The position numbers and the translations under genes are program-made. Shown piece by piece: positions 18,043 to 57,178 of a DNA stretch of 64,000 bases. Under the pieces are notes generated by a model that searched no databases, was not told the DNA's origin, and saw only the letters and a program-made list of their open reading frames with translations. Source of the stretch: Magallana gigas (lineage: Eukaryota); contig NC_088854.1 in NCBI RefSeq assembly GCF_963853765.1, positions 7,750,001 through 7,814,000 of the forward strand, read 5' to 3'. Numbering within the stretch: the stretch's first letter is position 1; every line of letters begins with the position of its first letter.

Positions 18043-21000
18043 ATGTCAAAAAGAAGAGGAAAGACACATGATCGGGAAAGTACTAAAGGTGACATTCCAG
18101 ATACATGTATATCTGATGAAATTCCAGAAATATCTGATGATGACTCTCCAGGGACTATGAGGAAAGAAGACCCTGGCTACCTGGCTCCTTTATCTACAGA
18201 ATCAAAATCTTGGACACAAAAATTTATGCTTAAATTAACACAGGAAATAAAAGCCAATCCATTTTGGAATGATCTGAAGTTTTGGATCCTGATAGGAACT
18301 TTTCTTGCTTTTCAATTGTATGTACTGGTACAGAACTTTCTCATTTTTAAGGTTGCTCACTGCATCATGAAATATCATAAAATAATTTCTCAAATCAGCA
18401 GAAAATTACTTGATTATGATAGATAGCCATATATATATATATATATACTGTTAAAGCAAAAATATTCATTGAGGATTTAATTTCCTTAATTCCTTTGGCA
18501 GTATAAATCAACAAAATTAAATCCATGACAAATTATTTAAACCAAGTATTAATGATTACAAAGATATTACGATATGACAATATTAAATGCTAACGAAATT
18601 CTCTGGTATTAAAACAACGAAGTTTTAACCCAACGAAAATATGTGTTTCTACAGTATATAGTTTTATTTCTTTGTATAAAAGGACATATTTTCATAGATT
18701 ATTAAATCATAATATATATATATCCTTTATTTCTTTTTCCTTTAAAAAAAATGTCTCCTCACAACAAATTTTATTTATATGCTTACCTAAGCTGAAAGCT
18801 CATGCAAGTAAGCTGTTTTGATCACTGTTTTTTAGATATGTGTGTGTCCCTCTATCTGTCCTAAATAAGCTAAATTAAACAATCTATTTTTGATTTCTTC
18901 TTCAGATTTACTCATTTAACTTTAATAAACCTTAGCACTTCCATTCAAGAATGAGGCTAGCTGTTGAGAAGGGAGATAACTAAAAAAGAATGAAAATGTT
19001 ATGGGTCAACCATTAATATTTCAAAAATCTTCTCAAGAATTTAATAATCTGTCAAAAATTTTACAGACTAAAGCTAGCTTCTTGAATTTTGTTGAAATCA
19101 TGACCCCAGGAAAACCTGATGGGGTTCTAAGTTTATTATGAAAATAGATAGAAAACGTACAACTCTTAATTAAATACTTCTTGAAGGGCGATAACTCTAA
19201 AGATAAAAAATTATGCAATCTATAATTTATAGATCGGGTGAAAAAAACCCAAAAACAAATTCAACGTCCTTGGCTAGTAGAGATTTAGGACCTTTACCTT
19301 AAATCACATTGTACATGTACTTTAAATTTACTTAATTTTCAGAATGACAGTTGCATATTTTATAAATTCAATGGAGAACAAGATCACAAATTTGAAATCC
19401 TGCCAAAAAAGAATTGCAAATTCAGACAAATCTTTATCCTGTTCAGACTGTATGTGCATTGCTACGGATGGATTTTCTTCAAAAGAGTTTGAAGATGTCA
19501 TTGAGAATCAAAAGAAAGATAGAAAAAAATATCAGGAATTGGAAAAAGCAAATGTTGATTTGCTAAGTCAGTTGTCAAAATATCAGGAACAAGTAGCAGA
19601 GTTTAAAGAAACGATATCAGAGTTTAAAACAAAGTGCAGTGATGATCATGTTACTAAACTTTTTGGTATAAACTGGAAGAAGGAAAAAGATATTTTTACC
19701 AAAGAAATTGAGAAGGCAGAGACATCATATAAAGTTTCACTGGATGAAGTTCAAAGCAATGTCGAAAAAAATTCTCAAAATGTTTTCTCTCAAATAGAAA
19801 AACAACGCAAGGAAATCACTGAATTTAAAGGTATTTGCTTTTAACATTGATCTTTTCAGGGGCCTATTATGTTATGCATTTTAACAGAAGATAATGTTAG
19901 AATTAATTAAGTAAAATTCTTTGCATATTAGTGCACTTTGCACTTTGAGGGGGAAAATATAATCTTTTAAGAATTATGATGTTTTATTAAAAAGAGTTAA
20001 TTATATTAACACAAGTAATTCTTTTTTGATTTAAGAAAAAATTCAGCCAGTAGATGATTTGAAAGCACAGTTTGAAGAAAAAATGGATAAAGTCAATGAT
20101 GAATTAAACAATTTGTTAGATAAATACCAGTCATTGGAAAAAAAGCAAAAATTTGAAGAAGAGAGAATTAATTCTACTGAAAAGAAACTTGGTGGGGTAG
20201 AAAGACAACAAAATTACGTCTTCAAAGAAATCAATGACATTCGTAAGTATCAACATCAGCATGCATGATACGTTGAATATTTGTTATGAGAAATAATGAT
20301 TGGATTGTTTCAAATAATATTTCTCAAAAATGGTAGACATTGCCAGTTTAATACATTTCATTTGATAATATACAGTTATTGACTGGGTATGAGGGCAACA
20401 TATGATTTGTTGGACCTAAAGACACAAATGTCGCCGAAGGCCAAAGACAGAGGAAAACATTTCATACAAGTCTGATTTGAAATGGCAAACAGCCATTTAT
20501 GTTGCGAAGCCCTTTGGCAATTTCAAATCCTAAAGACCTGTTGAATTGAATTCGCATTCTTTTTGCTAGACTTTTTGTTACTAAAAACTATATAGAAGAA
20601 TATTTATAATGGCATATTAACTATTCTGTTTACTTGAAAGTGACCCGATCTGCAGACAGAGTCACATTTTGCATAAAAAAAATAGAATCAAGTTAAAAGA
20701 AGTGTCCTTTATATTCACGGGCATTGGAACAGGGACAGCAGAGCTGGTGGTAACCATCCCAATACCTTTGCCAAATAAAATGTACATCAAATTTGTAATG
20801 GTGATATATGCTCAATGGAGTGGCTAAAGTAATCATGGCTACTTCTGACCAATGGAACAGCTTAAAGTGTATTGAAGTAAACTATTCTGTTTATACACGT
20901 GATAGCTTTCAAAAAGCTTGCCAGACTGAACAAAATTATTCCATGGAAGCATGAATGTATCAATTTGGATATTTTATAAGAAATGGATTTAAATTTTCGC

Positions 21001-24000
21001 TGCTGATCATTTATTCATCAAAGGAGCTTGCAGATTTAGGAAGTAACTTCAGTCTTTTTTCATCGTGCATGTACATGTATGCAACTTGAAATTACATGTA
21101 AATTATTTCATTATTATGCCCCCCTTCGACCCCCCTTCGAAGAAGGGAGGGCATATTGCTTTGCTGCTGTCTGTCAGTTTGTCAGTCTGTCGTTCGGTCG
21201 GTCCACCAACAGTTTCAGTTCATTTTCTTCGCAGAGGATGAACATATTGAAATTAAATTTGGTATACAGGTTTATCATGATAATATCTAGGTTAAATTTG
21301 ATATTGGGTATGATCAGGCTATTTTCGACAGAGTTATGGCCCTTGGACATAGAAAAATTTCAGTTATTTGCAGTTTCCGCTCATTTTCTTTGCAGAGGAT
21401 GAATATATTGAAATGAAATTTAGTGTACAGGTTTATCATGATAATATCTAGCTTTAGTTTGATATTGGGTACGATCAAGATATTTCTGACAGAGTTATGG
21501 TTCTTGGATGTAGAAAAATTCCAGTTATTTGCAGTTTCCACTGATTTTCGTCGCAGAGGATGAACATATTGAAATGAAATTTAGTATACAGGTTCATCAT
21601 GATAATATCTAGGTCAAGTTCGATATTGGATACGCTTGAGCAAATTTTCGACAGAGTTATGGCTCTTGGACGTAGAAAAATTCCAGTTATTTGCAGTTTC
21701 TGTTCATTTTCTTCGCAGAGGATGAACATATTGAATGAAATTTAGTATACAGGTTCATCATGATAATATCTAGGTCAAGTTTGATATTGGTATCGCTCGA
21801 GCAATTTTGACAGAGTTATGGCTCTTGGATGTAGAAAAATTCTAGTTATTTGCAGTTTCCGCTCATATTGATAAGAAATTTAGTATACACAGACAGGTTT
21901 ATCTAATTAATATCTAGGTCAAGTTTGATTTAGGGTATGATAAAGCAATTTTCTAAAGAGTTATGCCCCTTGGACTTAAAAAAAATTCCAGTTATTTGCA
22001 GTTTACGTTCATTTTCTTTGTGGATGTTTCCAAGGGAGGGGGGCATACGTGTTTCACAAACATCTGTTGTTTCAAATTATTTTAGGAATGTATCAAATTA
22101 TTGCATGTAAGCTTGAAAACGGAAGATAAAACAGTCAAATTTAGATTGTATTAGTTTAAATAATAATAGATATTTTTAAGCTTTTGAGTCAATATGATCC
22201 CAATTCTCATGATCCCAATTTGGACTTGAACACTAATTGGCATGCAAAAACTATGAATGAGACATAATGGTGCAAAGTCCTGCTTTACTTTCCACGCAAC
22301 AGCTGAGATTTCAATCTGATGGTTTGAATGAACTCATCAATTGGCGTAGATCCATGGGGAAGATGGGGGTCAAATGAATTTTTTTGGCATTTGTTTTTAA
22401 CAACTTCATATTATATACTTTGGATCGAATGTTATCGAATTAACATACATACTTGACTAGTAATTGTTTAATGTACACTTAGTAAGTCACCCATGTGCTT
22501 TTCAGGATGAATGAAATTGCCCAATTGATAAAAAATTTGGTCAGACCATGTTTGGCGTTAGTTCTCCCGGTAAATATTCAAGCTAAATGAATATATATTT
22601 GTTTTTATCCAAACTGATGATTCTTTGTTAATGATGATAATCCAACACCAATTACACCAATAGCTCACTGTTACTTATTACATCCATTTAACATTTTCAT
22701 CAATTGTGAATTTAAATATTGGCACATTAAACATGCATCGGTTTATTTTTTTAATGAAAAATCTTGATATTGCTTGCTCCCATTGCCAGACTGTTTTGAG
22801 AAGGCAACTTTGAAACTTTAGATATGCCTGATGCATGATGTCAGGCAGCAAACACAACATGACTTGCATGTGATGACTAAAGTATAGTTAATCGGCTAAC
22901 CAATAGATGTGACTGGAGAATAATCAGGGTTCTTAGTTTGCTGCAATTTTTTTTTCTGTAAAGAAATCTTTAGTATTGAAACCAAATGTTTCCTCTTATT
23001 TTTTTTTTTTAGATTTATACATTATCCTGTTCCTTGTTGTGGTGGTGATTGCTGTCATCTTTGCATCCCAAAAACTACTGCTTTATAGACAACCTTCTCA
23101 TACAGCTGAAAGAACAGTCTACCCGGTAGAGGCAATGTCGATGAGGTCAGGTCCAAACCAGAGAGTAGGAGGACAGGAAGTGGTATGAGTGTTCTATCAC
23201 TTTGTCAGATAACTCTGCTGTTTTCAGATTCTTGAAAAAAGATAGTGTTATTTAACATAGAGTTTTTAATGTACAAAACAAGTTTGATACAAGTAGCTAC
23301 TGAGTTTTTCACTTGAGTCGACCCAGGTTGACCCAATTTGTTTTTATTTTATCAACAGTTTTCAGTAAATGTCAAATATCGTAAGTTTTTAGAAACTCCA
23401 ATATCAATTATTATCTTTTTTTCTGATCAATAACAGTAGAAAACATCTTCACGATTTAAATAATCAAATTAAGATTAGATCGTTTGATCATGCAATCACA
23501 TAAGGTCTCACTTAACACAATAAGTAACATTTTAGATATCCAGTTATATTCTTGATAGCAAGTTTTGCTAGTGGTTCAAATCTAGCTGGCAGATTGCCAG
23601 TGTGCATCTGCTTGACTATATCTAATAGGTCATTCAGTTGTGACAATCTAATGGGTTCCTCTAGATCCTTGTGTAGCATTTTACAAGAAGAAATCCAAAG
23701 ATAAGATTTTAATCAGATTGAATTTTGGGCAGATTGTTGATACCCGGTATATAGTTTATAGTTAATTGATCATGTTGAACCTAGTACTTACTATTGATAA
23801 TATGTGCTCCTTTCAGTCTCGCGCTGAACTTCTTGCAAAAGTTTCTAGCAAAAAATTGGAGAAAGGGATTGGTATTATAAGCTTTCACTCCTCTACTCAG
23901 GAGTTCCATCAGAACCTTTTGAGAGTAGTTCCTAAACCCCATTCTCTGCCTATGCAGGTAATGAAATAGATATTTTACATGTTTGTTCGGTGGATTTTCA

Positions 24001-27000
24001 ATGCTAATTTTTTTCAAATTAAACTGTTCTTTGAAAATAATTACGTTTTACAGACCTATCTGATTGAAAAACAAGAGGATTTACTGAAAGTAAAGCCATA
24101 CAAGGTAACCATTGTTTTTGTGGACTTCAACGAAAGAAACATTATTCTGGAAAATCCTGACACTGAGGTTGGAGATTGTAGGAGACTAACAACAGAGATT
24201 TTTCTTTCGAGTAAATGTAAGTCTTCAGTATAACTATCTTGAACTAAGACTGATTCTCAACTTACCATACCAAAAGTATTAGGTGTCTATCTGACCTTTT
24301 GTCTATCATCAGGATCTGTAAATTTTTCTGTCTATTCAACTTTTTCTTCAGAACCACAAAGGACTATATATGGTATGGGCCTAAAATGGCCCCCTAAAAG
24401 GAATATCATTATTTTACTGTAATTCTTTGTTTTCTTTGTACAGATATATATGTCGTGTTTTAACTTAATGTTCATTTTGATTCAAGTGCCCACAATTTAG
24501 AAATACGGCATTGTAAAGACAGCCTGTCCCCGCTATTTTTGCATTTTAGCATAAAAAAGCTTGTTTTCAAGAAGTTTTTCTTTCAGGAAACATAGAGCGC
24601 ATGCTTGAACCAACACATTATTTTAATCAGAGATGAATCTAGCCAAGACTAATAAGTGACAAATATTTTGTCCTGGTTCAAGCATGCGCTCTATATTTCC
24701 CATTCGTAAAAAGATGTGAAAAATGTCAATTTCGACTGATTTTGATTGAATGTTTGAAATAGCGTCACTTCTGACGTCATATACTGCAAGTGAGTGCAAA
24801 TAAATCAAACAAATAAGTGAAAAATATATTTTATATGAACTCTTCTAAATTATAACATAACATTTTATTGTAACCGAAATACTTTAAAAAATGGTGAATT
24901 ATGGGGGCCAAATTCAACTCTTATCATATATAGTTCTTTCAACCAAACTTGGCAGAAAACATCTATTGATGAAAAGTTGTATTTGTGAAAATAGACTTTT
25001 GTTACCATATTGTCAAGTGCATTTGGAATTAAATTTAATTAGAAAATATGTGCTTGAAATTAATGAGAGAGTATCCAAGTGTCTCCAGAGTCAGTACACT
25101 CTTTGTTAATTCATATAAGGTATAACATTTTTCCCTAAAAAAAACCCCTATTATAATTAAGAAGATAACTGACATACTAATGGTACAAGAACAAGCATGC
25201 TACAATTTGTATTATTTGAATGCAAACATCATGCTGTTGTTTACATGTAAGTTTGAGACCAGTAATAATTAAAGTTGTATTTGAGGCAAGATAGTATAGA
25301 TAGGGATGCAAATAAGAAAAATAAATTACTCATTATTCAAATGAGGTATTGGTCTCTTGTTATTTACTCATTATTCAAGTGAGGTATGTGCCTCTTGTTA
25401 TTATAATTGCTTTGCTATAGTTAGGTGTTGGCTCACCAAGATGAAGGCAGGGAGAGCTTTTGGTATACCCTTGGTGTTGGGGTCCTGTTAATTTTTTTTA
25501 AGCAAGCTCTTATATAAGTTATTACTGGTTCTAACGTTACCAGACTCGCATGGATGGTGCATCTGGGCATACTTAAGGACTAAATAGAATTGGATGCTTA
25601 ATCTGAGTCATGAACTTCAGATGCTGGAGGAGGTAAGTTTTTTGGAGCAGGTTAAAGTTTTTGGAACAGGTGCCCTTTGATGGCGGCATATGTAAATTAT
25701 TGCTGGACCAGGTTCTTTCTTCACAAAACATAGTTACATGGATGGTACATCTTATGATACTGATCAACCTGGGGCTTCAATGCTGAATCTGAGCCTTAGG
25801 TTTTGGATGCTTGAGGAAATTTTGGTTTTTGGAGAAGGTTAAAGTCTTTGATGACCATATCTTAGTTATAACTGGTCTTATTTCAGGGAATGTGGATGGA
25901 TGATGCATCTTGTAATACTAATGTTCTTGACAGGCTTGGATTCTAAATCTTACACAGTTTAGGATGCTGATGCTAAAGTTTTTGGAGTAGGTCACATATC
26001 ATGGAAAACTTATTCAAACTTGCATGGTTGATTTATCTATGTGAACGAATTAAAGATCTAGCATAAAATACAGACAGTGATCTTGATTGGTTTAAGATTT
26101 TAGAGCAACTCAAAGTGTATTAGAATCTTGGAGATGGTTACATATTGAAGTAAATCCTGATTATACCCCATTCAGATGTGTACAGTTTATGATATAAATC
26201 TGATCTTGATTATAAAGGATGTTAAGAAAACGTGGTCCTTCAGACTCCTTCCTCAATTCAAAATTGCTTTATAGATGTGATTGTTGATATATTATAATAT
26301 CTTATAATTATAATACATCATATTTAGTTATTTAAGGAATGAATTTAATCTAATTTTTAACTATGTTATATGATTTAACACAATTTGGGCAGTTTTGGCT
26401 TTTTTAACCACAAAGCGATTTATAAAAAAAGCGTAAACTGTCCCAACTTATGTTATACTTGTATAACATAGTTTGAAATTAAATTTATTCCTTATGATTT
26501 AATTTTCTACTACTAAAATCAGAAGAAATTTACATTTTCCAGTGCCTTTGCCTGTGATAACACTACGTATTGATTTTGTACTATATAACCCATAACTTCA
26601 AATGACGCCAAATTGAGGCGCCAGTGGGGTTTGCTTATTTATATTTAAATATTTAATCGTACGATGGCTTAAAATTATATAAATATAAGTAATAAGGAAT
26701 CATTCTTAGAATTTTATGAGGTGATAATTTCAGTTGGGGGTGATCAAATATATCCCAAAGCCCTTCGGGCTTTATTGGATCTGATCATGCCCCAACCAAA
26801 ATTATCACCTCATAATACTCAAAGAATGATTATACCTCATTTGGGTCAGCTCTGTTTTCTTTGATTATAGTGTACATACTAGTGTTTTTTTGGTGATAAA
26901 TTAAAATAAAGCATACTTTTGTTTGTTTAGGTGATGTGTTTGTGGTTTACTGCAAAGATAGAGACTCCCAGTCTCTGCCACCAAATCAACTTTACAACAC

Positions 27001-27130
27001 CAAGCTGCATTCAGTTAAACAGCAGCCAATACTGTCCAAACTGAGTAAAGAAAACAGAGTGTTCTCTGTTAATAAAGCTTTACTTCCCCAACAAGCACAG
27101 CTTTTGGAGAACTGTTTCAAACTACTGTAA
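18043..27130 (+). CDS. Uncharacterised 2TM coiled-coil protein with C-terminal alpha/beta (TIR/SEFIR-like?) domain, paralogue 1, ~547 aa
   Basis: Exons 18043-18317, 19343-19830, 20036-20242, 23013-23182, 23817-23957, 24054-24216 and 26931-27130 total 1644 nt in frame. TM1 is FWILIGTFLAFQLMTVAYFI, TM2 is LYIILFLVVVVIAVIFAS, and the core motif is VFVDFNERNIILENPDTEVGD...CDVFVVY. Confidence 0.85.
18446..18656. mobile_element. Possible TA-flanked MITE (TACTGT...ACAGTA) in paralogue 1 intron 1
   Basis: Short inverted termini next to a (TA)n run. Confidence 0.4.
21112..22053 (+). mobile_element. Helentron/HINE-like non-autonomous element with ~5 internal 161-bp tandem repeats
   Basis: 5' TTATGCCCCCC...GGGAGGGCAT hairpin, (GTCT/GTCA)n microsatellite, units starting at about 21221, 21382, 21543, 21705 and 21864, and 3' GGGGGGCATACG. 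This layout is known for bivalve satellite-bearing Helitron-related elements. Confidence 0.8.
24365..24932. mobile_element. ~570-bp TA-flanked MITE in paralogue 1 intron 6
   Basis: Imperfect ~30-bp TIRs: TATATGGTATGGGCCTAAAATGGCCCCC and GGGGGCCAAATTCAACTCTTATCATATA. Confidence 0.65.
26332..26840. mobile_element. Hairpin-bearing non-autonomous element (possibly Crypton-like)
   Basis: Long imperfect palindrome (~26690-26835) centred on AAAGCCCTTCGGGCTTT (26757-26773), plus a second inverted repeat at ~26332-26495. Confidence 0.55.
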
Positions 27131-27446
27131 ATTTGCTAATTGTGCTGTGGATTAAAAAAAATATAAATAATAATTTTGATTATTGTGATTTTGTGTTGGG
27201 AATTTTTTTTATTCATATCATGTTGATTTTTATGATGAAAGTTATTTTTGGATGGAGGACTGCACCAAGTATAAAAGTAGCTTATAATGTTGTGACCAGG
27301 AAATAATTTTTTTTAATGTAATAAATAAATATTTCACCAAGATCTTATTCATATTGCTTTTGAAACTTATGATTAATTTTTTCCTTTTCTGTAAAAATAG
27401 TTTGTGGGTAATCAAAGCTCCATATAGGTTATTATACAATCATTAA

Positions 27447-27938
27447 AAGGGCATGGTCACGATTTTGGTCAAATTTTATTTTTCTGTTTTTATTATTTAC
27501 AATGCTTTATATATGCATTTCTAATGATAAAAAAAAATTTGGGTGCCCGTCGATGAATTTTAAGCAAGTTACAGGGCTCACAATTCTTCGTCATGTAAAC
27601 AAGGCTAGTGCCCTGTTTTTGTTTACATAGGTTCAATATACCAGTAAAAATCTTTTCCAAGATGATTTGTCTGTACTCTTATTCATTTTAAGCATAAATA
27701 AACAGTTCCTAACAATCAACATATTCATTTCAGGTTCAAAACTGGAATGTTCACTTCAACATTCAAAATGTAAACAAAAGCTTTGTTTACATAGCGTGGG
27801 ATGGTAAGCTCTGTAACTCGCTTCTAACTCAACAAATGAGACTCAAATTTTGGTTGATTACTTAAAATGCCTTACTGAAACATTATAAACATTTAAATTG
27901 AAAAAATAATTTTTGACCAAAATCGTGACCATGCCCCT
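27447..27938. mobile_element. Kolobok-like TTAA MITE, same family as 15120-15621, opposite orientation
   Basis: TTAA|AAGGGCATGGTCACGATTTTGGTC ... GACCAAAATCGTGACCATGCCCCT|TTAA. Confidence 0.85.
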
Positions 27939-28618
27939 TTAAATGAATTCTAATTGATACAATTTCTTTAGAAGTTTGATACTTTGAAATAAATGCAGAG
28001 AATAACTTGCTGATATGTGCGTAATTTTTTTCCCAACAGTAACCAACTATTTTGCTTCAAAATGGTCCAAACTTATGGAATATGCTTTTCAAAAATGACA
28101 TTGTACAGTTTGGCTTCAAAGCTTCAAACTCATAATTACATAATAAAAGGAAGCTGTATAACAAGTTGCCAGGGGTAAAATGTTTTTGATTCGTCCGTCA
28201 GTCAGTGACCCCTAACCAATAATGGGGCCCCAAGAGGGGTTCAAAGTTTAACATAGATATATTTAGGGAAAATGTTTAAAAATCTTCTTTAGAACTACAA
28301 TGCATAAATTTGTGTTATTAATCGTCAATATGTTTACTCTATTTAACGCGACATCTAGAAATCACGTGACATGGCAATAAAATTTCATATTCCCCTGTCA
28401 TCGTCATATTTTTCATCATTTCCTACCGCTTTGAGTTTTCATTCTATGCTTTTGAAAAATTCCGATGATGAGCATACGATGTAATTGAATGATTAATTTC
28501 GTTAGAAATCGTTTTAAAATCCTTTTCATATCAGAAACCTGTCATAGAAAGAAACTGGTAAACATTAACTACGTTATTGCTTTACTAGAATTGAAAAACG
28601 ATTACTTAGAAACCGATG

Positions 28619-28940
28619 TATTATATAAATAGTGCCTGTTTGGGAGGGTAACAGTTGAAATTGACACCAATTGAGGGGTGTCAATTTCAACTGTTATCCT
28701 CCCAAACAGACACTATTTATTTTGTTATACTGAATGTCTTAATTTTAAGAAAATTTTACTGCTTTAATATAGGAATAACGTGAATTCTACAGCGAACCGT
28801 ATGCGCATAATTTTCGCGCATGTAACATTTTTTAATGTTACCCGTTGCTAAGTGCGTTGCTAACGCTGAGGGTAATAGAAAATATTATCAACTGCGTCTT
28901 AACCAATCAGATTTCAGTATTTAACATGAAAGTATAACAA
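28619..28940 (-). mobile_element. Hairpin element, reverse-oriented copy of 60019-60393 with deleted hairpin tip
   Basis: Near-identical to the reverse complement of 60019-60393. The central ~53 bp of the hairpin is replaced by AATTGA. Confidence 0.85.
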
Positions 28941-29448
28941 TCTAAATTATCACCTGTCGTTCGATATAAATTATGAGGGAAATATGAAGATTTATTCCTC
29001 CATGAAAAATCATATTTCCCGGGGCAAAATATGTTTTTTTATTAGATATAAATCTTCATATTTCCGTCACAATTATGCTAAGAAATATATGATATTGCTA
29101 TGCAAGCATACTAAGATAGTGTTAAACCCTGACTCCCTAAACAATACTGGGGCCTCGAGAGGGTTCACGGTTCAATATAGAAATGTACGTGTATTAGGAA
29201 AATGTTTTAAAAAAACAAACCAATACTACAATTTGTGATATGTAATTTTTTTCAAACCGTGACCCCCCAGGCTAATACTGGAACCCTAAGAGAGTTTAAA
29301 GTTCAGTATATATAAAGAGATACAGGGAAAATGTTTTAAAATCTTTTTTTAAGAAACACAGTGCTAAGCTTAGTTACATTAAGTGAACTTTGTAAGCATC
29401 CTCATATCCTTATCTCATAATATCAAGGTCACAGCAACCCCTTTCATT

Positions 29449-30320
29449 TTTATACCCCCCGCAAACAAAGTTTGGGGGGTATATAGGAATCACCCTGTCC
29501 GTCTGTCTGTGCAATCGTGTCCGGTCCATATCTTTCTTATGGAGAAACATTGGAAGTTCTTACTTCACACAAAGATTGCTGATGACCTAAGGGTGTGTCA
29601 TGACCTTGACCCAAGGTCATTCAGGCAAGGTCAAGGTCACTGGCAGAAAAAATGCAAAATTCGTGTCCAGTCCATATCTTTCTTATGGAGAAACATTGGA
29701 GGTTCTTACTTCACACAAAGATTGCTTATGACCTAAGGGTGTGTCATGACCATCACGTAAGGTCATTCAGGCAAGGTCAAGGTCACTGGCAGAAAAAATG
29801 CAAAATTCGTGTCCGGTCCATATCTTTCTTATAGAGAAACATTGACATTGGAAGATCCTACTTCGCACAAAGATTGCTTATGACCTAAGGGTGTGTAATG
29901 ACCTTGACCCAAGGTCATTCGTGCAAGTTCAAGGTCACTGGCAGAAAAAATCCAAAATTTGTGTCCGGTCCATATCTTTCTTATGGAGAAATATTGGAAG
30001 TTTTTACTTCACACAAAGATTGCTTATGACTTTAGGGTGTGTCATGACCTTGACCCAAGGTCATTTGTGCAAGGTCAAGGTCACTGGCAGAAAAAATGCA
30101 AAATTCGTGTCCGGTCCATATCTTCCTTATGGAGAAGCATTGAATGTTCTTACTTCACATAAATATTGCTTATGACGTTAGGGTGTGTCTTGACCTTGAC
30201 CCAAGGTCAATTGAGGAAGTTCAAGGTCATTGTTTCGAAAATGCTAAATTTTGTCTGTGCCATTTCTTGTATTAATGGAAATATTAGAAGCTAAAATTTG
30301 ACACAAAGCTTGCTCTTCTC
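29449..30320 (+). mobile_element. Helentron/HINE-like element with ~5 internal 146-bp tandem repeats
   Basis: 5' TTTTATACCCCCGCAAACAAAGTTTGGGGGGTATA hairpin, (GTCT)n, and units at 29515, 29661, 29807, 29959 and 30105. A likely 3' end (GCGGGGGGTATC..GCTCACAGT..TCTAGTT) lies at ~31120-31155. Confidence 0.8.
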
Positions 30321-30459
30321 AGGCCATATAAAATTATTTTTAGATTTTCATCCCCATTTCTCTGAAAATGGCCTGCCCCGATGAAATTTTTATTTGGTAA
30401 AAAAATGTGTGGAAAAAAAATTTCGGAAAAAAATCGGGCTCAGTATACCAATAATTCAA

Positions 30460-33201: not shown

Positions 33202-33458
33202 ATGAGGGGAAACAGAGGGAAATCTAGAAGTAGCAGCTCTGTACCAAATGAATCCAAGAAAAGTCCAACGACTTCCACTCATAAAAATAGCCCTGACGAC
33301 TGGTCTTCTTCAGCCCCAAAATCAGAGGCTTCGACAGAAAACAAATCTCAACGAATAGACATAAAACCTCTGGGAAAACTACCTGACGGATTTCTAAATG
33401 AGCAGAAGTTTTATATCCAATTGGTAGTCTTACTGGTTTTGCAACTGTATGTATTCAC

Positions 33459-33501
<43 letters not shown>

Positions 33502-36500
33502 ATGAATATATCTCTTTATTTTAACTAAAGGTAAATCTAAACTAAAGCTTGTTTAAAAGCAACTAATTTGTCTTCGGATACAACTGTAAGTCAGACAGGA
33601 CCGACTTTATGCCATGCATGATATATATACATGTTCTAGCGATTCATGCAAAATGTGTCAGTCCTTCATAGGAAAAAGGCATTTGCATATGCTAGAAAAC
33701 TTTTGACTTGAAAGGGAAATGGCCATGAAGTAAAAACTGTCAAATAGTTTTTCTTTCAATGCTTCACATATATGTTTATAATAGTTACCTAACATTCAAA
33801 ACTCAAGTTATGAGCGAGATAAAGAGCTCAAAATGGTTTGTACAAGTTTAAGATTTTTGAGAGAAGTCACAATGTCGACAAAAAAGCAAACGCACACAAC
33901 AAACAAGACACGTTTAAGCCATTTTGGTAAATAAAAGTAAACATGTAGTGACCTTGGAATGACCATGCATGGGAGCCGCGTAGCATCTAATCGACTTGTG
34001 TGAGGATAGCATGAATCCCTGCAGAACCCTAGGATTTACATCTTATCATTTGTTTTTCAGAATAACAGTTCCGATAGTAAATCTTTTAATGAAAAGCGAC
34101 AACGTGGAAAAATGTATTGAAACTGTTGAAAGGAAACTTTATCCTAGACAAGAGAAATTCTTCGAATTAGATAAAAAGTTTACTGTGACAGAAAACAAAT
34201 TGTCAGAGCTGGAAAAACTGCTCCACGAGAACTATTTCACTGGACTGTTAGATAAGGAATGGGAGAAGAGGAAAGTATTATTGACAAAAGAATTAGAAAA
34301 GAAACACGCTATTTTGAATGATATTGTGGATAACGAGCTGAAAAACGTTTATGAAAAGATCACAGATGTATTTCAACAGATTACCACTCATAAAAAAGAA
34401 TTTGATGATAAACTCAACGAGAGAGGTAATTCATTTATAAAATGTGACTAAATACGTTGTGAGGTTACTCGCAATTAACTTTGCTTAAAAAACTGTATAA
34501 GCTTACTTATTTCATATTACATATAACTTTACATCATGTCAATGAGCTTTGATTGCTATATTTTGTTCGACATCATAATAAGAATTTTTTAGCCGAAGAG
34601 CGACTACAATAGATTGCATATAGCAATGACAAAGCCTATTGATATGGTGTACTTTCTGTAACTACCATTATGACTCCAGACCAATGACAAATTGTCTCAC
34701 ATTCCAGGAGTTAATCAAAGATTAGCAAAGTAATATAGAATTGGAAGGAATAAAATCTTCTGAATAACATTTTAACAATTTTTGATATTGTAATACATGA
34801 AAGTGTCCTGATAAAGTAAAAATGCTATATTGTTAAAACCATTTTCAATCTATAGTCCTTTGAAGTAGTGCATCGTTTTACATGTACAGTGTATATAGGA
34901 ACAAACTTAGTGGAGGTAAAACTTTTCAACAATTTCCTCTTTAAAATATCAATCTTGCAATAAGTGATATAAAATATCATCATGATAATGTGTAGTGTAA
35001 AGTTTATCGATTGAGTCCCATGTGTTGCAATAAGTGATATATAATATCATCATGATAATGTGTAGTGTAAAGTTTATCGATTGAGTCCCATGTGTTGCAA
35101 TAAGTGATATATAATATCACCATGATAATGTGTAGTGTAAAGTTTATCGATTGAGTCCCATGTGTTGGTATTTGATATATAATATCATCATGATAATGTG
35201 TAGTGTAAAGTTTATCGATTGAGTCCCATGTGTTGGTATTTGATATATAATATCATCATGATAATGTGTAGTGTAAAGTTTATCGATTGAGTCCCATGTG
35301 TTGGCATTTGATATATAATATCATCATGATAATGTGTAGTGTAAAGTGTATCGATTGAGTCCCATGTGTTGGCATTTGATATATAATATCATCATGATAA
35401 TGTGTCGTGTAAAGTTTATCGATTGAGTCCCATGTGTTGGCATTTGATATAAGAGAGGTGGATGGTCTCAGCTATGTATAAAGAAATGCATGTAGGAACA
35501 TTTTCAAATTTTAATGATAAAATGTATTATATTTAAAAGCTAACGACAGAATTGATGGTTAATTAGACGAACACACAGGCTCTTTGATATCTCTTTCATA
35601 ATGTGCTTATAAAAACGGGATCAAAAGAAAAAAAGGCTATTCATATTTGAAACAAATATTGATGCATCACTTAATGGTAAACCTGAAAAACAATAGTACC
35701 CGGTATTTACGGTAAATTTCATGTGATAAGAGGGGATGTAACTTTTGTATAAAATGGCAAAATTACTTTATACAGTACTATTCAATTGAATTATATTACC
35801 GCTAATGAAGTATTACTTGATGCGTTGTCGATTGATGATCTGATATTGTACACTCCCGCAGCTGTGCCATTTGGAGTTCTATAATTAAAAAAATTGCCCC
35901 TTCTTTTGTTGATCATATGTAAAAATCTTAGAAAATATCCACCTTATACTAAATGTCAAATATATTTATGATATACTTACTTATTTGATTACCAGTAAAC
36001 ATACATGTATATGTTATCGGAAATAAGTATATCTAATGAATTAAAATGTGTTTTCTCAATTCTTTTAGAGGTACTTTTGAAAGGCAATATGGAAGTCACA
36101 CTTGAGGAGGAAATAAAAAATGTAACTCAAAAAATGAAAAATAAACATTCAAATTTGACTAAAATAGTCGAAGATATAGAATACAGACTTGCTGAAGTTA
36201 AAGAGCAGATGGAATCTTTCTCGGTCGACATGAGAAGTGCAATGGAAACAATTTATAAGGAAGTTAAAGGAAAGCAATCAGAAATGGAGACGAAAATAAA
36301 ATTGAATGAAGGTACTCTTGAAATAGTAAATGAAAGGATGTATTGTTTCTCCAACAAAACTAAAGTATTAAGGAGGGAGACAGAAAGATTGGATGCGAGT
36401 TCTTCAAAACTTAACAGAAAAATGAAATCTAATGAAAAGAAAATTATTGAAATCAATAGACAATTATATTTTAACTCCAAAAAAGTTAACGACCAAATAA

Positions 36501-39500
36501 AACATTTGGAGAATAATACAGAAGAGAGACTAGATGGAGTAGATGGGATGTTCAATGTTACCAACGAGAGACTAGATGGAGTAGATGGAATGTTCAATGC
36601 TACCAACGAGAGACTAGATGAAGTAGATGGTATGTTCAATGCTACCAACGAGAGACTAGATGGAGTAGACAGGCTGTTCAATGTTTTCACCTCTGATCTT
36701 TACGACATTAGTAAGTTTTGACTCAACAAGTAAACAATATGCTATTACGTATTCGTTTTCCCAGTTTGAGATATTGAGAAACTTTGAATAATTGATACCT
36801 ACTTTGTTTTACTGGTATGCGAGATTAAATTGATAAAAGGTTACAGGGAACACATGGTTTTTGATTTTAAAACAAATGTGTTCATTGCAGGGTTTCTTAT
36901 TTCAAAGGAGGGCTATAACTTGTTTTTTGGGGTTTTTTAAAAATAATTTCTTTTAAATTCCTCCATTTATACTTCCTTTTTTGGTTGGGTTATATTTATT
37001 CTTCCATCAATAAAATATGATGTATTTTGAATTTATAAACCATTTGGTTTGTTGTTGTGTTTTTTAAAAGAAACGAAATTCCTTCTGTGCTGTTTTCCCT
37101 TATAACTTTTTATGTTTTTTTTAATCGAGCTTAATTAACTGTCTCTAAAGGATATTTTGATGATACTTCTTAAATAAGTATATACCTATACATCGAAGAT
37201 TTTAAGATTTAAAAAAATCCCCATGCGTTTTCCATTTTAATTATGAATGTGTGAAAATTTTCAACTTGTTTCTTCTTTTTTTTTTTATTTCAAATATTAT
37301 TTAAAAATATGTTTTGATAAATAATAACAAAGTTTATTTATTTACAAAAATAATTTTTATATAGAATATTAAGTCTTATTGAACTGTAATATATGCTATA
37401 CTTAATGGTCTATCAACAAATGTCTTTGTAAAATATCTTTTCATTGCCAATATTTTAAAACCGTCATTCATTATTTTCTTAATATAACTTTAAAAAAATC
37501 TTGTTCCCATACCTTTATTTTATTATACTCATTTATATTTAATTTTCCTCTTGTTATTGTTTTACAAATATTAATTAAAACAATTAAAGTCTATATGGTG
37601 TATTGGCCATTATTATCCAGCTGCATACTTCAGTTTGATTGATGGTGTCTTTTTTCTCACGCGAATTTTTTAATATGCGTTATACTTATTACCTATACAC
37701 TTTTTTGTTTAACAAATACATGTTAAGACACTTTGAGTGCCGAGTATTTTTTGTTTTGTGATACTAGAACTTTTGTTTGTTTGTTGGGTTTTTGTGTGTG
37801 TTGAAACCACGACTAATTTTCAATTTAAGTCAAGTTACGGTATTATTTATCAAAAGCAATAATAAGAAACCATGTTAATAGATAAGTTTAGTCCAATGTT
37901 AGAATGCTGAAAACTGTATATTAATTGTTCTTTTTTATATATCCTGCTGATTTTAAACTTAGGTTTATACATTGTTGTGTTGCTATTTGCGGTGGTATTT
38001 GCTGTTTTCCTTGCTGCCTATGAAAAATTGGTATCAAAACAACTTCGGACTGTTGATAGTGCAGCGCCTGCAGAAGTTACGAAAGGCCACATGTTGGAGT
38101 CTGGACGAAACAAAAGATTAAAGAAAGAAGATACGGTATAAAAATTGTATTTTATACATGAACACCAACAACGTATAGCAGAATAGCTGCATCACAATTC
38201 TAGTTTAAGCAGATATATTTTCAAAATGTTGCAACACTTTAAAGAAGCAGCTTACTAGTATTTTACAGAACATATATTCAATTCAAACAGAAAAATAATT
38301 TCTATGGTATCAGTATAAAAAAAGAGTACAGCTCTTAGCTAGCCTAGTTGCTATTATAAATGTGCAAACTTCATTAATCATTACCTTTTTTTATCAAAAC
38401 ATCATTAGACTACTACATATATTCTAACATTAAAAATGATCTATTGTTTTGATTTCTTTTTTATATTTTGACATCCGATCTTCTTCGTTTGTGACATTGA
38501 TAGTAGCAATTTAACTCGAATTTTTCTAAGCTCATTGTCAAACGAATAATACATTGATGTCAATTACTAACGAATTACTGAAAGCTTGTATTTAGAAGCA
38601 ATAGTTAGACTGATAAGTTCATTCTAACAGCTATAATCCAACTTTATTTGCATGTTTTCAAAGAAATAAAATACATTATATGTTAAAACAAATAAGAATA
38701 AGGGGAATTTGTCATATCATATTTATGATCATATTCTTTGATAAGTTTTGGTGTTTAATATAAGGATTTTTACTGCTAACAATTTAACAAAAAGTAAATT
38801 ATAAAAAAAAAACAAATCAATACAAGGAATGTGTATTGTGTTGATTAAATGTAGAGTGCTAAGGCAAATTATTAAATATATAAATTAAAGGTTTTCAAAT
38901 AGTAAACTTTAGGAAGTAAAAGGACTTTCCTATAATTGTATTTTTCTCACACTTATCAGTCGGTTATACAGTTTTCCAGTGCTCTTATTGAGAAACTATC
39001 ACGAAAAAACAAGGAAAAAGGAGTTGGTATTATCAGTTTTAATTCGTCAACTCAAGAAAATCACAAGAGGTCTTTTGAAGCAATTGATATACCCTCATCT
39101 TTGCCAGTTCAAGTAAGAGTAGTGAATAAATTGCATTTGTTATTTGATTTCTAAAAAGTTTGCATTTACTGATTTAGTCAATTTTTAAATTTTAATGTTG
39201 AATTTCATACATTTTACAGGCCTATGTTATTTTAAAATTAGATGACCTAATGCTCGTGCAACCTTACACGAAAATGTTTATTTTTGTTGACTTCAATGAA
39301 AGAAACATTATTCTTGAAAACTCCGAAACTGAAATTGGAGACATCAGGAGACGAACCACTGAAGTCTTACTCGAAGTAGGGTGTAAGTATTTGGATAAAA
39401 AAGGAACTTGGAACAGTTGTTATAATTGGCCGTTATTAATATTATGTTTTCTTTAATTTTACTATCAATTTATTTTGGGGGAGCAAAACAAAACTTGCTT

Positions 39501-39702
39501 ACATTTTCTTTCAGGTGATGTCTTTGTCGTCTACTACAGAGATAAAAATTCTAAATTTTTGCCAAAAGAAAACCTTTACAGCACCAGTCTATATTCCATT
39601 GAAAAGCAGACAGTACTCTCCAGATTAAGAAGCAGAGGCAGAGTGTTCTCTGTTTATGATACTTTCCATCCTCAGCAAATTCAAATATTGAATACTGCCT
39701 AA
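33202..39702 (+). CDS. Uncharacterised 2TM coiled-coil protein with C-terminal alpha/beta domain, paralogue 2, ~638 aa
   Basis: Exons 33202-33446, 34061-34425, 36069-36710, 37963-38135, 38972-39112, 39220-39382 and 39515-39702 total 1917 nt, with the same intron phases as paralogue 1. TM1 is FYIQLVVLLVLQLITVPIVNLL, TM2 is LYIVVLLFAVVFAVFLAAY, and the motif is IFVDFNERNIILENSETEIGD...CDVFVVY. Confidence 0.85.
33459..33500. repeat. (ATCT)n microsatellite, about 10 units, just after the paralogue 2 exon 1 donor
   Basis: Read directly. Confidence 0.95.
34955..35451. repeat. 68-70-bp minisatellite x7 in paralogue 2 intron 2
   Basis: Units start at 34955, 35025, 35095, 35165, 35233, 35301 and 35369, with core CATGATAATGTGTAGTGTAAAGTTTATCGATTGAGTCCCATGTG. 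Confidence 0.95.
36524..36691 (+). repeat. Coding 42-bp (14-aa) tandem repeat x4 in the paralogue 2 ectodomain
   Basis: ERLDGVDGMFNVTN / ERLDGVDGMFNATN / ERLDEVDGMFNATN / ERLDGVDRLFNVFT. Confidence 0.95.
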
Positions 39703-43332: not shown

Positions 43333-46300
43333 ATGGCGCAAAACACATCCGACAATTCGGAATGTTTGGCAGAATCATGGCGTATAGAAGCTTTAGAGGG
43401 GAAAACGGAAAAAACTGAGGATATAGCACGAGATGTTGATTCGAGAAAATGTCAGAATACTTCGACGCAAGAAACTTTATCAAATTCAAATATTTCTGGA
43501 AAAACATCCGATCCAGAGGACTTTTTAGTGCAAACGCACCATTTATCGTTGCAAACAGACAAAACATATGAACTTCAAGAACAGTCGGAAAAAGAATCCG
43601 TTAATTTAAACGAATTCCAAAATGAACCTTTGAAAAATCCAAACTTTCAATCAGAAAAAACAAGAGATGATTCAGCACATTTAATACGTGAAAAATTAAT
43701 GACAAAATTAGAGGATTCAAATTATTCTTCAGAAACATGCCATCCAGAAGTGCCATCAGAACATTTAGCGTATCATACAGATGAAACATCTGAGGAAAAA
43801 TATGAAGAAAAATCAGAAAATATAAAAACATTACAAGATAACGTTCCAGATTTGAAATTAAATCACCCATCCCAGAATTTGAGGGACCCATCAGAAGTAA
43901 TTTCTCGTGATTTAAAGCATAACTTTCCAGAGACAAAGACACATGGGGATACCGGTATAACCGTTGCCCATGGTGAATTCAAACCTTCAGAACCAACAGA
44001 TAACACCACCACTGAAAAGCAAACGCAGTCTGTTGAAACAACAAAGACAGTGTCTTCCTATGGACTCTTGATTCTGACAACGATCTTAATACTTGTTCAT
44101 TTGTATGTATTTTTTGCCTTTTTTATAAACCAATCTTAAGCGTTGAAGCTATTTTTTATTTTCCTAACGAAAAATCATGGTTTATGTTAGGTTACATAAA
44201 CCAAAGTCTCAAGCTTTTCTGATTAAAATGTGCTGCTAAAATTACCTTCGTCAAGGGATCTTCTCGATTAAGAATACACAAATCGATGTACCAATATTGT
44301 CAACACTTTAAAAAAGCCGAGAAAAACACATCATGAATTTAATAATTTCATTATCTATTTTTCATTTGCTTTCTACTTTCAGATTTACGATTGTTTTTAT
44401 CTACAGTCGATTGACAGGGGATAATAAAATAACAACCGAAAATCTTTTAAACAAAGATAATACACATCCTGTAATTCAAATGAATGAAACCTGCGAGAGG
44501 ATATTAAAAGAAATGCAAGAAGAGTTTGAGAAAACACAGACCATTACTGAAGATCATTTAAAAGAGGAGCGCAAGGAAATCACTGAAATGAGAGGTATTC
44601 TTGTTTTTAAAAAAAAAAGTTTCTTACAAAAATTTATTGTGTTTCACATTTATATCAGTTATTCGTCTTAGGAGTTTGATTTTTCAAACACAAATTCAAC
44701 ATCACTGTTTACATTAATCAATAAACAAAATGAGTACTCATTCTGCATCTAATTTAAATTCTATTTTAAAAGGACAATTATGAACACGTCTCAGCTGCCG
44801 GATGTGGATATCATTCTGTTGTAATGAAACTTTATGTCAATACCTTATCTTAACATGCTGATACTTCTTAATCACTTGAACAATTAAATGGTTCTTTAGT
44901 GTTCCATGTGGGTATGAAGGTAGCTAGCATTGCAGAAGAATTACTTGCTTCACGTTAGAATTAATAAAAGCATAAGGCGTATAATTAGCAGGTAAAAACG
45001 AATCATATAATGATGCAACATCATCAGAACACGAATGGTATTAAAATAAAACATCTTTACTTTTAAATTCTTAGTTTTTATGGTTATAAAAACAGCATTA
45101 ATTTTGCTTTGATTTATTTAGAAATAAACAAAAAGACTAATTTTGTATACAACTCCTGTCATTTAAGCATTGAATGCTGATGTTTGGATACTAGTATCAT
45201 TGGTTCTATATAACACACCGAGGCTGTGAATACAAATTGAATATAATTTGTCTGTACATCATTGTTGTGTTATACGATCGACTACATCGAAAAATAAGTA
45301 TCCAATACAGTGTACTTATATTTATATTCACATTGATGTGAATTTGTATGAAGTATTTGTGTATCGTCGCTTTAAAGCCTTTATATACGCTCTGGGTCAG
45401 GGATATGAAACATAAATAGAGCAGTAATTTGAGCATGTTTATTTAGTTCGCATCCGCGACTAAAAATATAGTGCCAAAAACTTTGTAGAAAAAATCTTTT
45501 TATTTAACTAATAGATATGAGTTAATGGTTATTTTTTATGGGAACATATCAAATTGGTTCTGTAAGTTTGAACGTTTAATTTGTTCTCACAATAATGAAT
45601 ATACTCATAACACGTTATGACATTTATATTTGTGCTCATGGCGCATGAATAGGAAAAAATGAATTCACAGGAAATTGAACTTTGCATATTTCAATTCTAA
45701 TGCAATCATTCAGTCGCACTGAATGTAAATATTACTATATCTACAAGCAGAATTTACAATGCGGTTGCTTCGAATCATATATGTACAAGCTTCTTAATGT
45801 TAAATAGTTTACGATAGGTTTAGGATACAATATAAATGGTATTGTGAGGCCTGGTAAGTAATTACCTCATTTCTTATTTATCTCAAGGAGTTTGCCAATT
45901 TAAGAAAAGTTGAAATATCTTTATCAATTCTAGGAAAAATTCAGTTTTTGGAGGGTATTCAATCAAAACTGCAAGTCCAAATGGATACTCTGGAGAAAAG
46001 CTGCAAAGCAATGGAAGAAAAATATTCGGAAATCAAAACTAATATTATGAGTTCCGAAATTAATTTCAAGAAAGAAATATACGATATCAGTAAGCATTCT
46101 TTCTGAAAATAGTCTTTATTACTTGAAGGAACCCAATTTGTGGGTGCTGTATGCATGGTAAACAGTCCATCCATCCGTACGCTCGTCTTATATTTTCTAT
46201 TTTAAAAAAACTGCATGAACTAATTTACTGTAGGAATCTTTCCTCTTTTGAAATTATAATTTCTGTAGTATGTGTATAAAAATTTCACAGATCTTTCAAA

Positions 46301-48303
46301 ATATCCTGTAGAAAATTATTTTTCGAAAGGAAATTATTATTTTCATTATCATTTATAAAATTTAAAAGGTGAAAATCTTGCCTGACAGGTGAGATACACC
46401 AATTACAAATAAATGTACAATCAAATATTATATTTAATATTTATCTATCTTTCAAAAGTAAGTTGATATCTGCAGAATTGTATCATTTTGTTGACAATAA
46501 ACAGTCGATTTGATATTCTTGAACATCTTATAAGAACAAGAAACTCAGTATGATTGTTTTCTTTGGCAGATTTATACATAATACTGTTTCTGATTTTGAT
46601 GATAATCGCTGTCATCTTTATGGCCCAAAAGGAACTGCTACATAGAAAATATCATGAGTCTGATCATGGCCAAAAACAAAAAGTTGGAGGACAGGAAACC
46701 GTATGAATAAAGCTACAATTACTACACGGAACAACTGATAAAAACTGTATAATTTTATGTCTCAGTTCTGGTCCTTCTTTAGTAGTTCTCTTTGAAACGG
46801 TTGTTGTTGTTTTTTAGGCTTTTTCAGAAGAACGCTTTGTGATGAGTATGTCACAAAAAGTTAAAGAAAATGGAATAAGTCTTATCAGCTTTAGTTCATT
46901 AACTCAGAATTTCCACAAGGAAATACTGAAACAAGTTTTGGAACCAAAAGCTTTGCCGTTACATGTAAGTTATTTATGTACTTCAGTTTCTTTTGCTTAT
47001 CTACATTAACGCTTAGATTGATATTAAAATAAAGATTGTATTACAGACATGCGTGGTTGGAACTTTAAACGATTTGTTCAATATTAAGCCATACCAGGTA
47101 ACGATTATCTTCGTGGACTCCAATGATAGAGACGTTATTCTGGAAAACCCAGAGACTGACATTGGAGATCTTAGGAGAAAAACTACCGAATGTCTATCGA
47201 AAATAAATTGTAAGTCTTATAAACAGTACGTTCATGAAGAAATAAATGATGAAAACAATAAACCATTTTCGATCGCTGAATTGATATTAAGTTGGTACCA
47301 GTATTTTACTTTCAAAAAACAACAACTGATTTTGAATAGACCATATCAATGTTTAACAAGGTCTTGTAGATCTCTTGGCGACGATTTCAGCTCGTACATA
47401 TTTTTTTCTTTTGTTCACATTTTATACACTTTAGTTGGTGCAAGAGGAACTACTGTGTAGCAGATATTGCATTGCAGAAATTTTAAAGCTTATTTGCTCT
47501 TTTGTTTTGAAATATCAATGTGCTTTTTTAGAAGGGAAAAACATACATTCATTGCAACATTTAAACATTTCAAAAGATTCAACAAGTAATGATACTGTTC
47601 TCAGTGTTATTTTGAAAAGTTGATTCTGGGAACGGAACGTTCATGAATATGAAAAATGTGGCAGAAAAAACCAAAGAAGGGAAAATTCCTCAAAATTTTA
47701 AATCCGATAACGATTGATTGTCCTCGAATTACTGCATGTTGCCTTATTCAAGGTAAACAGTAAATGTGTAAGCACTTCAACGATGGCAATATTGTAAGCT
47801 TTCAAATGTTTTAGTCATTTAAGGATCACGTGGTTAAATTTGACTTTATCAGATTCACTGTCAAAATTGCAGAAAAAACCTCTTTCGTGGTTATAGTACA
47901 TTTTTCACAATTTGGGATCTTGTAGTCAATATTTAAATTTGACTTTTGTTGATATTTAAAAAGAATTCATCAGTAATCGGTGTATTAAAAATGATTGGTT
48001 TGTGTTGACTTTTCGTTATTGCTTGGAATGTGCTTGTTCTTTGTTATCAAATTTAGAGAAGAGACTGATATTTCTAATCTTTCTTCTTGTTTACTAGGCG
48101 ATGTCTTTTTGATCTATTGCAAAAACAAAGGGTCCCGGTCTTTGCCTAAAGATGAATTATACAATACCAGTCTACAATCAATTAATCAAAGGCCAATGCT
48201 GTCTACACTGAGTAATCAAAACAGGGTATTATCTGTGTATGACACCTTCCATCCCCAGCAAGTGAAGCTCTTGGAGGATCGCTTTAAACAGCTGGGATCC
48301 TAA
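43333..48303 (+). CDS. Uncharacterised 2TM coiled-coil protein with C-terminal alpha/beta domain, paralogue 3 (long acidic N-terminal tail), ~594 aa
   Basis: Exons 43333-44102, 44383-44594, 45934-46089, 46570-46700, 46818-46964, 47047-47209 and 48098-48303 total 1785 nt. TM1 is YGLLILTTILILVHLFTIVFIY, TM2 is LYIILFLILMIIAVIFMA, and the motif is IFVDSNDRDVILENPETDIGD...CDVFLIY. Confidence 0.85.
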
Positions 48304-48459
48304 CAAGTCTGCTGTGATTTTTCCATAAAAATGATCAAGATAAACATTGTTGAAATATTCATGCCTTTTTTATTTGTATTGGTATTATTTATGTTTATTT
48401 TCAAACGACTAGTTTAATAATATTTACTATTAATGGATTAATAGATACATAATTGTTAA

Positions 48460-48461
<2 letters not shown>

Positions 48462-48536
<75 letters not shown>
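48462..48536. repeat. (TA)n microsatellite, about 37 units
   Basis: Read directly. Confidence 0.95.

Positions 48537-48540
<4 letters not shown>

Positions 48541-57178: not shown

Follow-up and report, generated by a model that had tools for sequence, protein, structure and literature searches.

Four paralogous genes, here called G1-G4, stand in tandem on the + strand of a stretch of Magallana (Crassostrea) gigas DNA and encode members of an undescribed family of putative membrane proteins, each combining a heptad-rich helical segment with a conserved C-terminal domain. The window, by which we mean the whole 64,000-nucleotide (nt) stretch analyzed, comes from assembly GCA_963853765.1 (its base 1 is OY970746.1 base 7,750,001), contains no N and is AT-rich eukaryotic DNA. 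Gene models, assembled manually with stop-to-stop frames and conserved GT-AG sites as guides, give products of 547, 642, 594, and 531/509 amino acids (aa), and a tblastn search found no additional copy of the array in the window. G1 (18043-27130, 547 aa) has coding exons at 18043-18317, 19343-19830, 20036-20242, 23013-23182, 23817-23957, 24054-24216, and 26931-27130, and its hand model is identical to P0116 (XP_065930865.1). The coding exons of G2 (33202-39702, 642 aa as isoform X1 or 638 aa as X2) lie at 33202-33446, 34061-34425, 36069-36710, 37963-38135, 38960-39112, 39220-39382, and 39515-39702, with X1 identical to P0126 (XP_065930867.1). Those of G3 (43333-48303, 594 aa) lie at 43333-44102, 44383-44594, 45934-46089, 46570-46700, 46818-46964, 47047-47209, and 48098-48303. 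G1-G3 thus have seven coding exons apiece, joined by GT-AG introns with phases 2,1,1,0,0,1. G4 (51243-57178, 531 aa as X1 or 509 aa as X2, XP_065930872.1/873.1) has coding exons at 51243-51295, 54511-55190, 55305-55445, 55629-55837, 55980-56105, 56517-56685, and 56961-57178; exons 2-7, which were built by hand, show phases 1,1,0,0,1 and are entered in phase 2.

Annotation and transcripts agree with these models. GenBank lists products of 547, 642, 594, and 531 aa whose starts and ends match ours, G4 exon 1 aside, and its G3 product has the same length, start, and end as the hand model. The G4 hand model equals XP_065930872.1 except in exon 1 (51243-51295), which was not chosen by hand; it encodes 17 hydrophobic, signal-peptide-like residues and is taken from the annotation. 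A scan for the donor motif common to exon 1 of G1-G3 found no match in G4, and a hydrophobicity scan returned the annotated exon among several candidates without singling it out. Two annotated alternative splicing events alter the products: in G2 the exon 5 acceptor (38960-38972) moves 12 nt downstream, shortening the protein from 642 to 638 aa, and in G4 an internal, earlier exon 4 donor (55772-55837) drops 22 aa, from 531 to 509. A 1,769-nt contig (L001, assembled from SRR10799818) aligns to G1 in seven blocks that end at the exon borders of the hand model, and its 546-aa product is 97% identical to G1. For G2, a contig from a diverged allele or orthologue (L007, SRR31729888) aligns in blocks that match the hand-model exons. 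Neither a protein identifier nor a transcript was recovered for G3, and a search for a G4 transcript contig found none. With all four reading frames intact and spliced transcripts for G1 and G2, pseudogenes and annotation artifacts are ruled out. A preliminary description of this DNA had proposed a tandem expansion of four co-oriented paralogues sharing seven coding exons and the phases given above; the four genes, the identity of the hand models with the NCBI products (G4 exon 1 coming from the annotation), and the joining of G1 and G2 exons at model borders by assembled transcripts all uphold it. In the L007 transcript itself, two successive open reading frames (ORFs; 235 and 353 aa) stand where G2 has one, so either the allele or species has a frameshift or stop codon there, or the contig was misassembled.

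The proteins encoded by G1-G3 share a common layout, consisting of an N-terminal tail, a first hydrophobic segment (transmembrane segment 1, TM1), a heptad-rich helical segment, a second hydrophobic segment (TM2), a linker, and a conserved domain of about 165 aa. A hydropathy scan finds two strong hydrophobic segments in each of the three, with TM1 spanning the junction of exons 1 and 2 and TM2 at the start of exon 4, where hydropathy reaches 2.0-3.1 over 19 residues. The tails range from about 73 to 244 aa, the longest (about 244 aa) being that of G3. Exons 2 and 3 encode the second half of TM1, a cysteine motif, and the heptad-rich ectodomain (19343-20242 in G1; equivalent exons at 34061-36710 in G2, 44383-46089 in G3, and 54511-55445 in G4), exon 4 encodes TM2 and the disordered linker (23013-23182 in G1; 37963-38135, 46570-46700, and 55629-55837 in G2, G3, and G4), and exons 5-7 encode the conserved domain (23817-27130 in G1; 38960-39702, 46818-48303, and 55980-57178 in G2, G3, and G4). 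G4 departs from this plan: it has TM2 and lacks the N-terminal tail, and its first segment resembles a signal peptide. The previously proposed order of tail, TM1, coiled coil, TM2, linker, and domain is therefore supported by hydropathy and heptad contrast for G1-G3 and fails for the tail of G4.

The segment between the two hydrophobic stretches has the properties of a long helical rod. It measures 115-324 aa, contains only 1-4 prolines, and shows a contrast in hydrophobicity between heptad positions a/d and the rest that is well above that of shuffled sequences (z = 4.4-10.2; for the C-terminal domain z is about 0). In an AlphaFold2 (AF2) model of full-length G1, helices cover residues 138-189 and 200-346, the second continuing into TM2, and disorder is predicted for the tail (1-58), the linker (346-378), and a cysteine-rich stretch (104-137). 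Part of the rod is built from repeats. Exon 3 of G2 carries a coding 42-bp tandem repeat (36524-36683, + strand; 3.8 copies by Tandem Repeats Finder) whose unit encodes 14 aa, or two heptads, and three of its four copies include an N-x-T sequon; an older C. gigas model (P0002) has five such 14-aa units with the sequon in four. G4 has longer repeats, as judged by eye. Just after TM1 lies the motif C-x12-C-x2-C-x-C ending in IATDGFSS, which is nearly invariant among G1 orthologues of Crassostrea, Saccostrea, and Ostrea. In G1 it forms part of a membrane-proximal stretch, NLKSC...C-S-D-C-M-C-IATDGFSS, at residues ~105-145 (window ~19380-19500), adjoined in several orthologues by an N-I-T sequon. 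AlphaFold leaves this stretch disordered, with a predicted local distance difference test score (pLDDT) below 50; it may form a small disulfide knot.

Several features bear on the orientation of these proteins in the membrane. In 32 family members with two TMs, 139 sequons fall within the inter-TM segment, far above the number expected from shuffled sequences (77.6 ± 7.4, z = 8.3), while the C-terminal part is depleted (32 observed vs. 45.8 expected, z = -2.2) and the N-terminal tail is close to expectation (45 vs. 36.6, z = 1.6); within G1-G4 sequons occur in tails and C-terminal parts as well, and significance arises only in the family-wide count. Charge around TM2 conforms to the positive-inside rule, with 74 K+R and 33 D+E in the 15-aa flanks on its C-terminal side and 53 K+R and 77 D+E in those on its N-terminal side, again family-wide. 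Six members, among them G4 and a protein of Mya arenaria, start straight with a hydrophobic segment that resembles a signal peptide. Because of the enrichment of sequons between the TMs, their depletion in the C-terminal part, the positive-inside charge at TM2, the signal-peptide-like starts, and the conserved cysteines, the rod probably faces the lumen or the cell exterior and carries glycans, with the C-terminal domain probably cytosolic. The sequons and membrane-proximal cysteines listed in the preliminary description were all found in the proteins, and its proposal of a two-anchor, heptad-rich, glycosylated ectodomain coupled to a cytosolic conserved domain gains support from the heptad, sequon, and charge statistics, as a prediction.

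Among the paralogues, the C-terminal domain is the most conserved part, with 34-52% identity versus about 20-30% in the ectodomain. In an alignment of 51 domain sequences, F, I, E, Y, and L residues are invariant and one loop is strongly conserved, with the consensus FVDFNERNIILE-x-P, then GDLR. An AF2 model of the domain based on this alignment has a (beta-alpha)5 fold at high confidence (pLDDT 94.2, predicted template modeling score, pTM, 0.90), with DSSP elements E11-18, H24-32, E42-46, H50-55, E59-67, H85-96, E99-105, H125-137, E141-144, and H150-160. Long, well-defined loops follow strands 3 and 4, and the invariant Glu (E76 of A3) and a near-invariant Asp are located after strand 3. Its conserved loop and polar residues may form a site for binding or catalysis. 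By its predicted structure, the domain falls within the flavodoxin-like fold class, as TIR domains also do.

Searches of sequence and structure databases indicate that this domain is new and has no Pfam family. No family was matched by the 51 domain sequences (E ≤ 10), by ten full-length relatives, or by single exons; the full-length proteins gave only sub-threshold coiled-coil families and the exons only noise (KH_PARP14_6 at E 0.037, FERM_C at E 0.14). A profile search of PDB sequences was empty at E ≤ 10, PADLOC gave isolated, inconsistent matches to the 51 domains that we regard as noise, and the nucleoside 2'-deoxyribosyltransferase profile found no match among the domain sequences. In a Foldseek comparison with the PDB, template modeling scores (TM-scores) reached at most 0.52, and the single match at E ≤ 0.001 was TRAPPC11 (E 6.6e-4, TM-score 0.44). 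The top 50 matches comprised IRGQ (0.52), flavodoxin domains (up to 0.48, reached by FprA), nucleoside deoxyribosyltransferases (0.40-0.47), plant and bacterial TIR domains (0.40-0.48), and SGNH hydrolases. The two best, the GTPase-like domain of human IRGQ (8q6q, TM-scores 0.52/0.50) and the N-terminal region of TRAPPC11 (7b6h), differ from the oyster domain in having only 10-14% identity to it, a root-mean-square deviation of 5.5-8.2 Å, and no P-loop or other motif in common, a generic alpha/beta likeness. Against viral structures Foldseek returned weak generic alpha/beta matches only.

The family extends well beyond the oyster array. An exhaustive HMMER search with a profile of four exon 6 sequences recovered 102 clusters at E ≤ 0.001; three of these 102, the representative-search matches P0024, P0043, and P0091, were rejected as repeat artifacts. 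All members with a source name are molluscs. They include oysters (Magallana, Crassostrea virginica, Saccostrea, and Ostrea), the scallop Ylistrum, Mytilus mussels, the clams Mya, Mactra, and Mercenaria, the unionids Potamilus and Sinanodonta, and the protobranch Solemya, as well as abalone (four Haliotis species) and the chiton Liolophura, so the family is mollusc-wide and not specific to bivalves. Members are frequently found on one contig with close locus numbers (in Haliotis, Solemya, and Saccostrea), and clustering is a trait of the family. Existing database names, among them "chromosome partition protein Smc," myosin heavy chain-like, paramyosin, BRE1-like, and "leucine-rich repeat protein DDB_G0290503," follow from nothing more than the coiled-coil composition. 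Literature searches found nothing relevant on LOC105329367, on adjacent loci, on oyster tetherin, or on bivalve TIR transmembrane coiled-coil proteins. Without a Pfam family or a literature record, and with names that are coiled-coil artifacts, the family is undescribed, as had been supposed.

Divergence is concentrated in the rod. We compared G1 with transcripts L003/L004 (from two other runs, SRR4419969 and SRR8856684), which encode a 548-aa protein, P0114. Exons 1 and 4-7 and the untranslated regions are 94-99% identical at the nucleotide level, compared with 84.5% for exon 2 and 78.5% for exon 3, and the hyper-divergent block (15-21%) is confined to the coiled-coil ectodomain encoded by G1 exons 2-3, between near-identical flanks. 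The two proteins share 98% of their residues in the domain and 66% of those in the ectodomain, and the Nei-Gojobori ratio of nonsynonymous to synonymous divergence (dN/dS) is 0.17 in the domain (dS 0.047) and 0.77 in the ectodomain (dS 0.24); between P0114 and P0113 the ectodomain ratio is 1.48. G2 and L007 show the same trend, with 80.9% nucleotide identity in exon 3 and 95.8% in exon 5. Such a pattern suggests that alleles diverged long ago, or that gene conversion or introgression took place, within the rod only, and it is consistent with diversifying or balancing selection.

The window also contains other repeats and genes. Three tandem repeats of five to seven copies each, with units of 161 bp (21210-22018, G1 intron 3), 146 bp (29515-30229, between G1 and G2), and 68 bp (34965-35451, G2 intron 2), probably derive from a satellite or transposable element. 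The 3.2-kb first intron of G4 contains arrays of a 21-bp minisatellite in both orientations (51350-51673, 52957-53155, and 53666-53824), the first lying immediately downstream of exon 1; they yield long spurious ORFs (MLKYQHV... repeats) on both strands. Downstream of the array are two genes unrelated to it, one for a prefoldin subunit (58655-61752, - strand; Pfam Prefoldin_2 at E 4.5e-12 for the exon at 58658-59032) and one of the PROSER3 family (from 62043, + strand). Upstream, a 354-aa open frame (13213-14277, + strand) that is very rich in Lys, Arg, Ser, and Glu and has no Pfam match is probably an exon of a low-complexity protein.

We tentatively favor, with somewhat less than even confidence, the view that these genes represent a mollusc-restricted, undescribed family of membrane proteins with an oligomeric, fast-evolving rod outside, a novel cytosolic alpha/beta domain, and a receptor-like role. 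Hydrophobic segment 1 would be a signal anchor; G4 and some relatives would probably have a cleaved signal peptide in its place. The helical segment with its heptad repeats would then be translocated and N-glycosylated, and TM2 would stop transfer and leave the conserved C-terminal domain of about 165 aa in the cytosol. The rod-like ectodomain would oligomerize as a coiled coil, evolving fast as a recognition or contact surface, and would hold together at least two copies of the (beta-alpha)5 domain. That domain would signal through its best-conserved features, namely an exposed loop that follows strand 3 and polar residues at the C-terminal end of each of strands 1, 3, and 4, and could do this with a bound partner or with a small molecule that it binds or processes. 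What the data establish is the gene structure, the splicing of G1 and G2, the distribution of the family, the heptads, the sequon and charge statistics, and a confident fold prediction; topology, oligomerization, the receptor-like role (the best of our readings), and any immune function are inferred. Several observations weigh against it. Signaling is an assumption because no known signaling domain was detected, and the literature search found no functional or induction data on the family. The flanks of TM1 are nearly charge-neutral, the sequon and charge statistics count related sequences as independent with coding repeats inflating the counts, and the full-length AF2 model of G1 is poor (pTM 0.36), with a hairpin and an extended rod indistinguishable in it. 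A dN/dS near 1 is equally consistent with relaxed constraint on the coiled coil, and coiled coils diverge fast without any recognition role.

The main alternatives differ in what they ask of the domain and of the rod. The preliminary description had assigned the C-terminal domain to TIR/SEFIR, and a very divergent true TIR or SEFIR (STIR) domain would make these proteins innate-immune receptors whose signaling depends on homotypic TIR assembly or on cleavage of nicotinamide adenine dinucleotide. The predicted (beta-alpha)5 fold, the acidic residues after strand 3, and the roughly 10 plant or bacterial TIR domains among the top 50 PDB neighbors (Foldseek probability 0.93-0.98) speak for such a relationship, and the oyster domain resembles TIR domains (plant RPS4/RUN1 and bacterial) and flavodoxin-like folds alike in its three-layer fold, its size, and conserved acidic residues beyond the central strands. 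However, no match to TIR, TIR_2, or SEFIR turned up among the 51 domain sequences (E ≤ 10), the ten full-length proteins, or the separately scanned exons, and the PDB profile search returned no such relative either. TIR structures score no nearer (E 1.5e-3 or weaker) than IRGQ, TRAPPC11, flavodoxins, or deoxyribosyltransferases, which do equally well or better, and SEFIR structures (IL-17R, Act1) are absent from the top 50. The link between strand 2 and helix 2 comprises residues 47-49 only and helix 2 just 6 residues, leaving no equivalent of the BB-loop; Box 1-3 motifs are lacking too, and the conserved, putatively functional loop follows strand 3 instead. What is shared with TIR is the general fold class only, so we consider the TIR/SEFIR assignment improbable and do not retain it. 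Slightly less probable still is a tetherin-like restriction factor, in which a double-anchored coiled coil physically holds budding enveloped virions, for example of ostreid herpesvirus 1 (OsHV-1), on the cell surface. Like tetherin/BST2, the proteins of G1-G3 have a putatively cytoplasmic N-terminal tail, a TM helix, a heptad ectodomain with sequons and cysteines, and a second anchor, and their fast ectodomain evolution (tetherin, too, evolves fast), widely ranging rod length, and tandem duplication would suit such a role. Their only conserved part, however, is the predicted cytosolic domain, for which a tether would have no use. Where tetherin has a C-terminal glycosylphosphatidylinositol (GPI) anchor, these proteins have a second TM helix, and about 200 residues, the linker and a folded domain among them, come after it. 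Both anchors would be inserted co-translationally in the same membrane, and in G4 (which has no tail) and others the signal-peptide-like first segment may be cleaved, leaving one. The tetherin rod has about 100 aa and the oyster rods are often much longer, the two share no sequence similarity, and no Pfam match to BST2 was found in the ten full-length proteins. The comparison with tetherin is thus best taken as a topological analogy.

A serious rival, although an unlikely one, is that these are non-immune structural or adhesive membrane proteins, such as a CLIMP-63-like luminal spacer, a nuclear-envelope protein, or a component of cell-cell contacts, gametes, or secretory granules, with the C-terminal domain as an adaptor to the cytoskeleton or to trafficking. 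The long coiled-coil rod, variable in length, would fit this role, the nearest structural neighbors include the trafficking- and autophagy-related TRAPPC11 and IRGQ, no immune domain was detected, and reproductive proteins also have fast-evolving ectodomains. On the other hand, a lineage-restricted family that is multi-copy and clustered in several molluscs would be unusual for housekeeping structural proteins, and diversifying or balancing selection is suggested by an ectodomain block that is hyper-divergent while its flanks are near-identical. The LEM, MSC, and CKAP4 signatures expected of MAN1/LEM2 and CLIMP-63 types were not matched in the Pfam scans, which gave only sub-threshold coiled-coil noise, and other nuclear-envelope or endoplasmic reticulum-shaping domains were not found. 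Type II receptors with coiled-coil necks (scavenger receptor A, CD23, DC-SIGN) offer a further comparison, in that their helical ectodomains, which are oligomeric, glycosylated, and built of repeats close to the membrane, resemble the predicted rod of the oyster proteins. Such receptors have one TM and a terminal ligand-binding head (collagenous/SRCR or C-type lectin), whereas the oyster rod would return to the membrane and the globular domain would be cytosolic. The receptor-like reading can also be carried further, to a mollusc-specific class of innate-immune surface proteins in which a hypervariable, double-anchored, glycosylated rod senses or holds enveloped viruses or foreign membranes and a new flavodoxin-like effector domain, distantly related to the nucleotide-processing folds of TIR domains and deoxyribosyltransferases, acts in the cytosol, with old, strongly divergent ectodomain alleles kept under balancing selection. 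In this extended form we consider it quite unlikely.

Bivalves lack adaptive immunity, suffer mass mortalities from OsHV-1, and carry many lineage-specific expanded gene families that are unannotated. Misleading RefSeq names (Smc, myosin, paramyosin, BRE1-like) hide the present family from keyword-based surveys of immune genes. It nonetheless has a well-defined and testable architecture and a domain without a Pfam family, and it occurs in bivalves as well as in abalone and a chiton. Should the cytosolic domain turn out to be a signaling or enzymatic module, these proteins would constitute a new type of receptor for invertebrate immunity; if it does not, the annotation of the family is still corrected and a new domain family defined.

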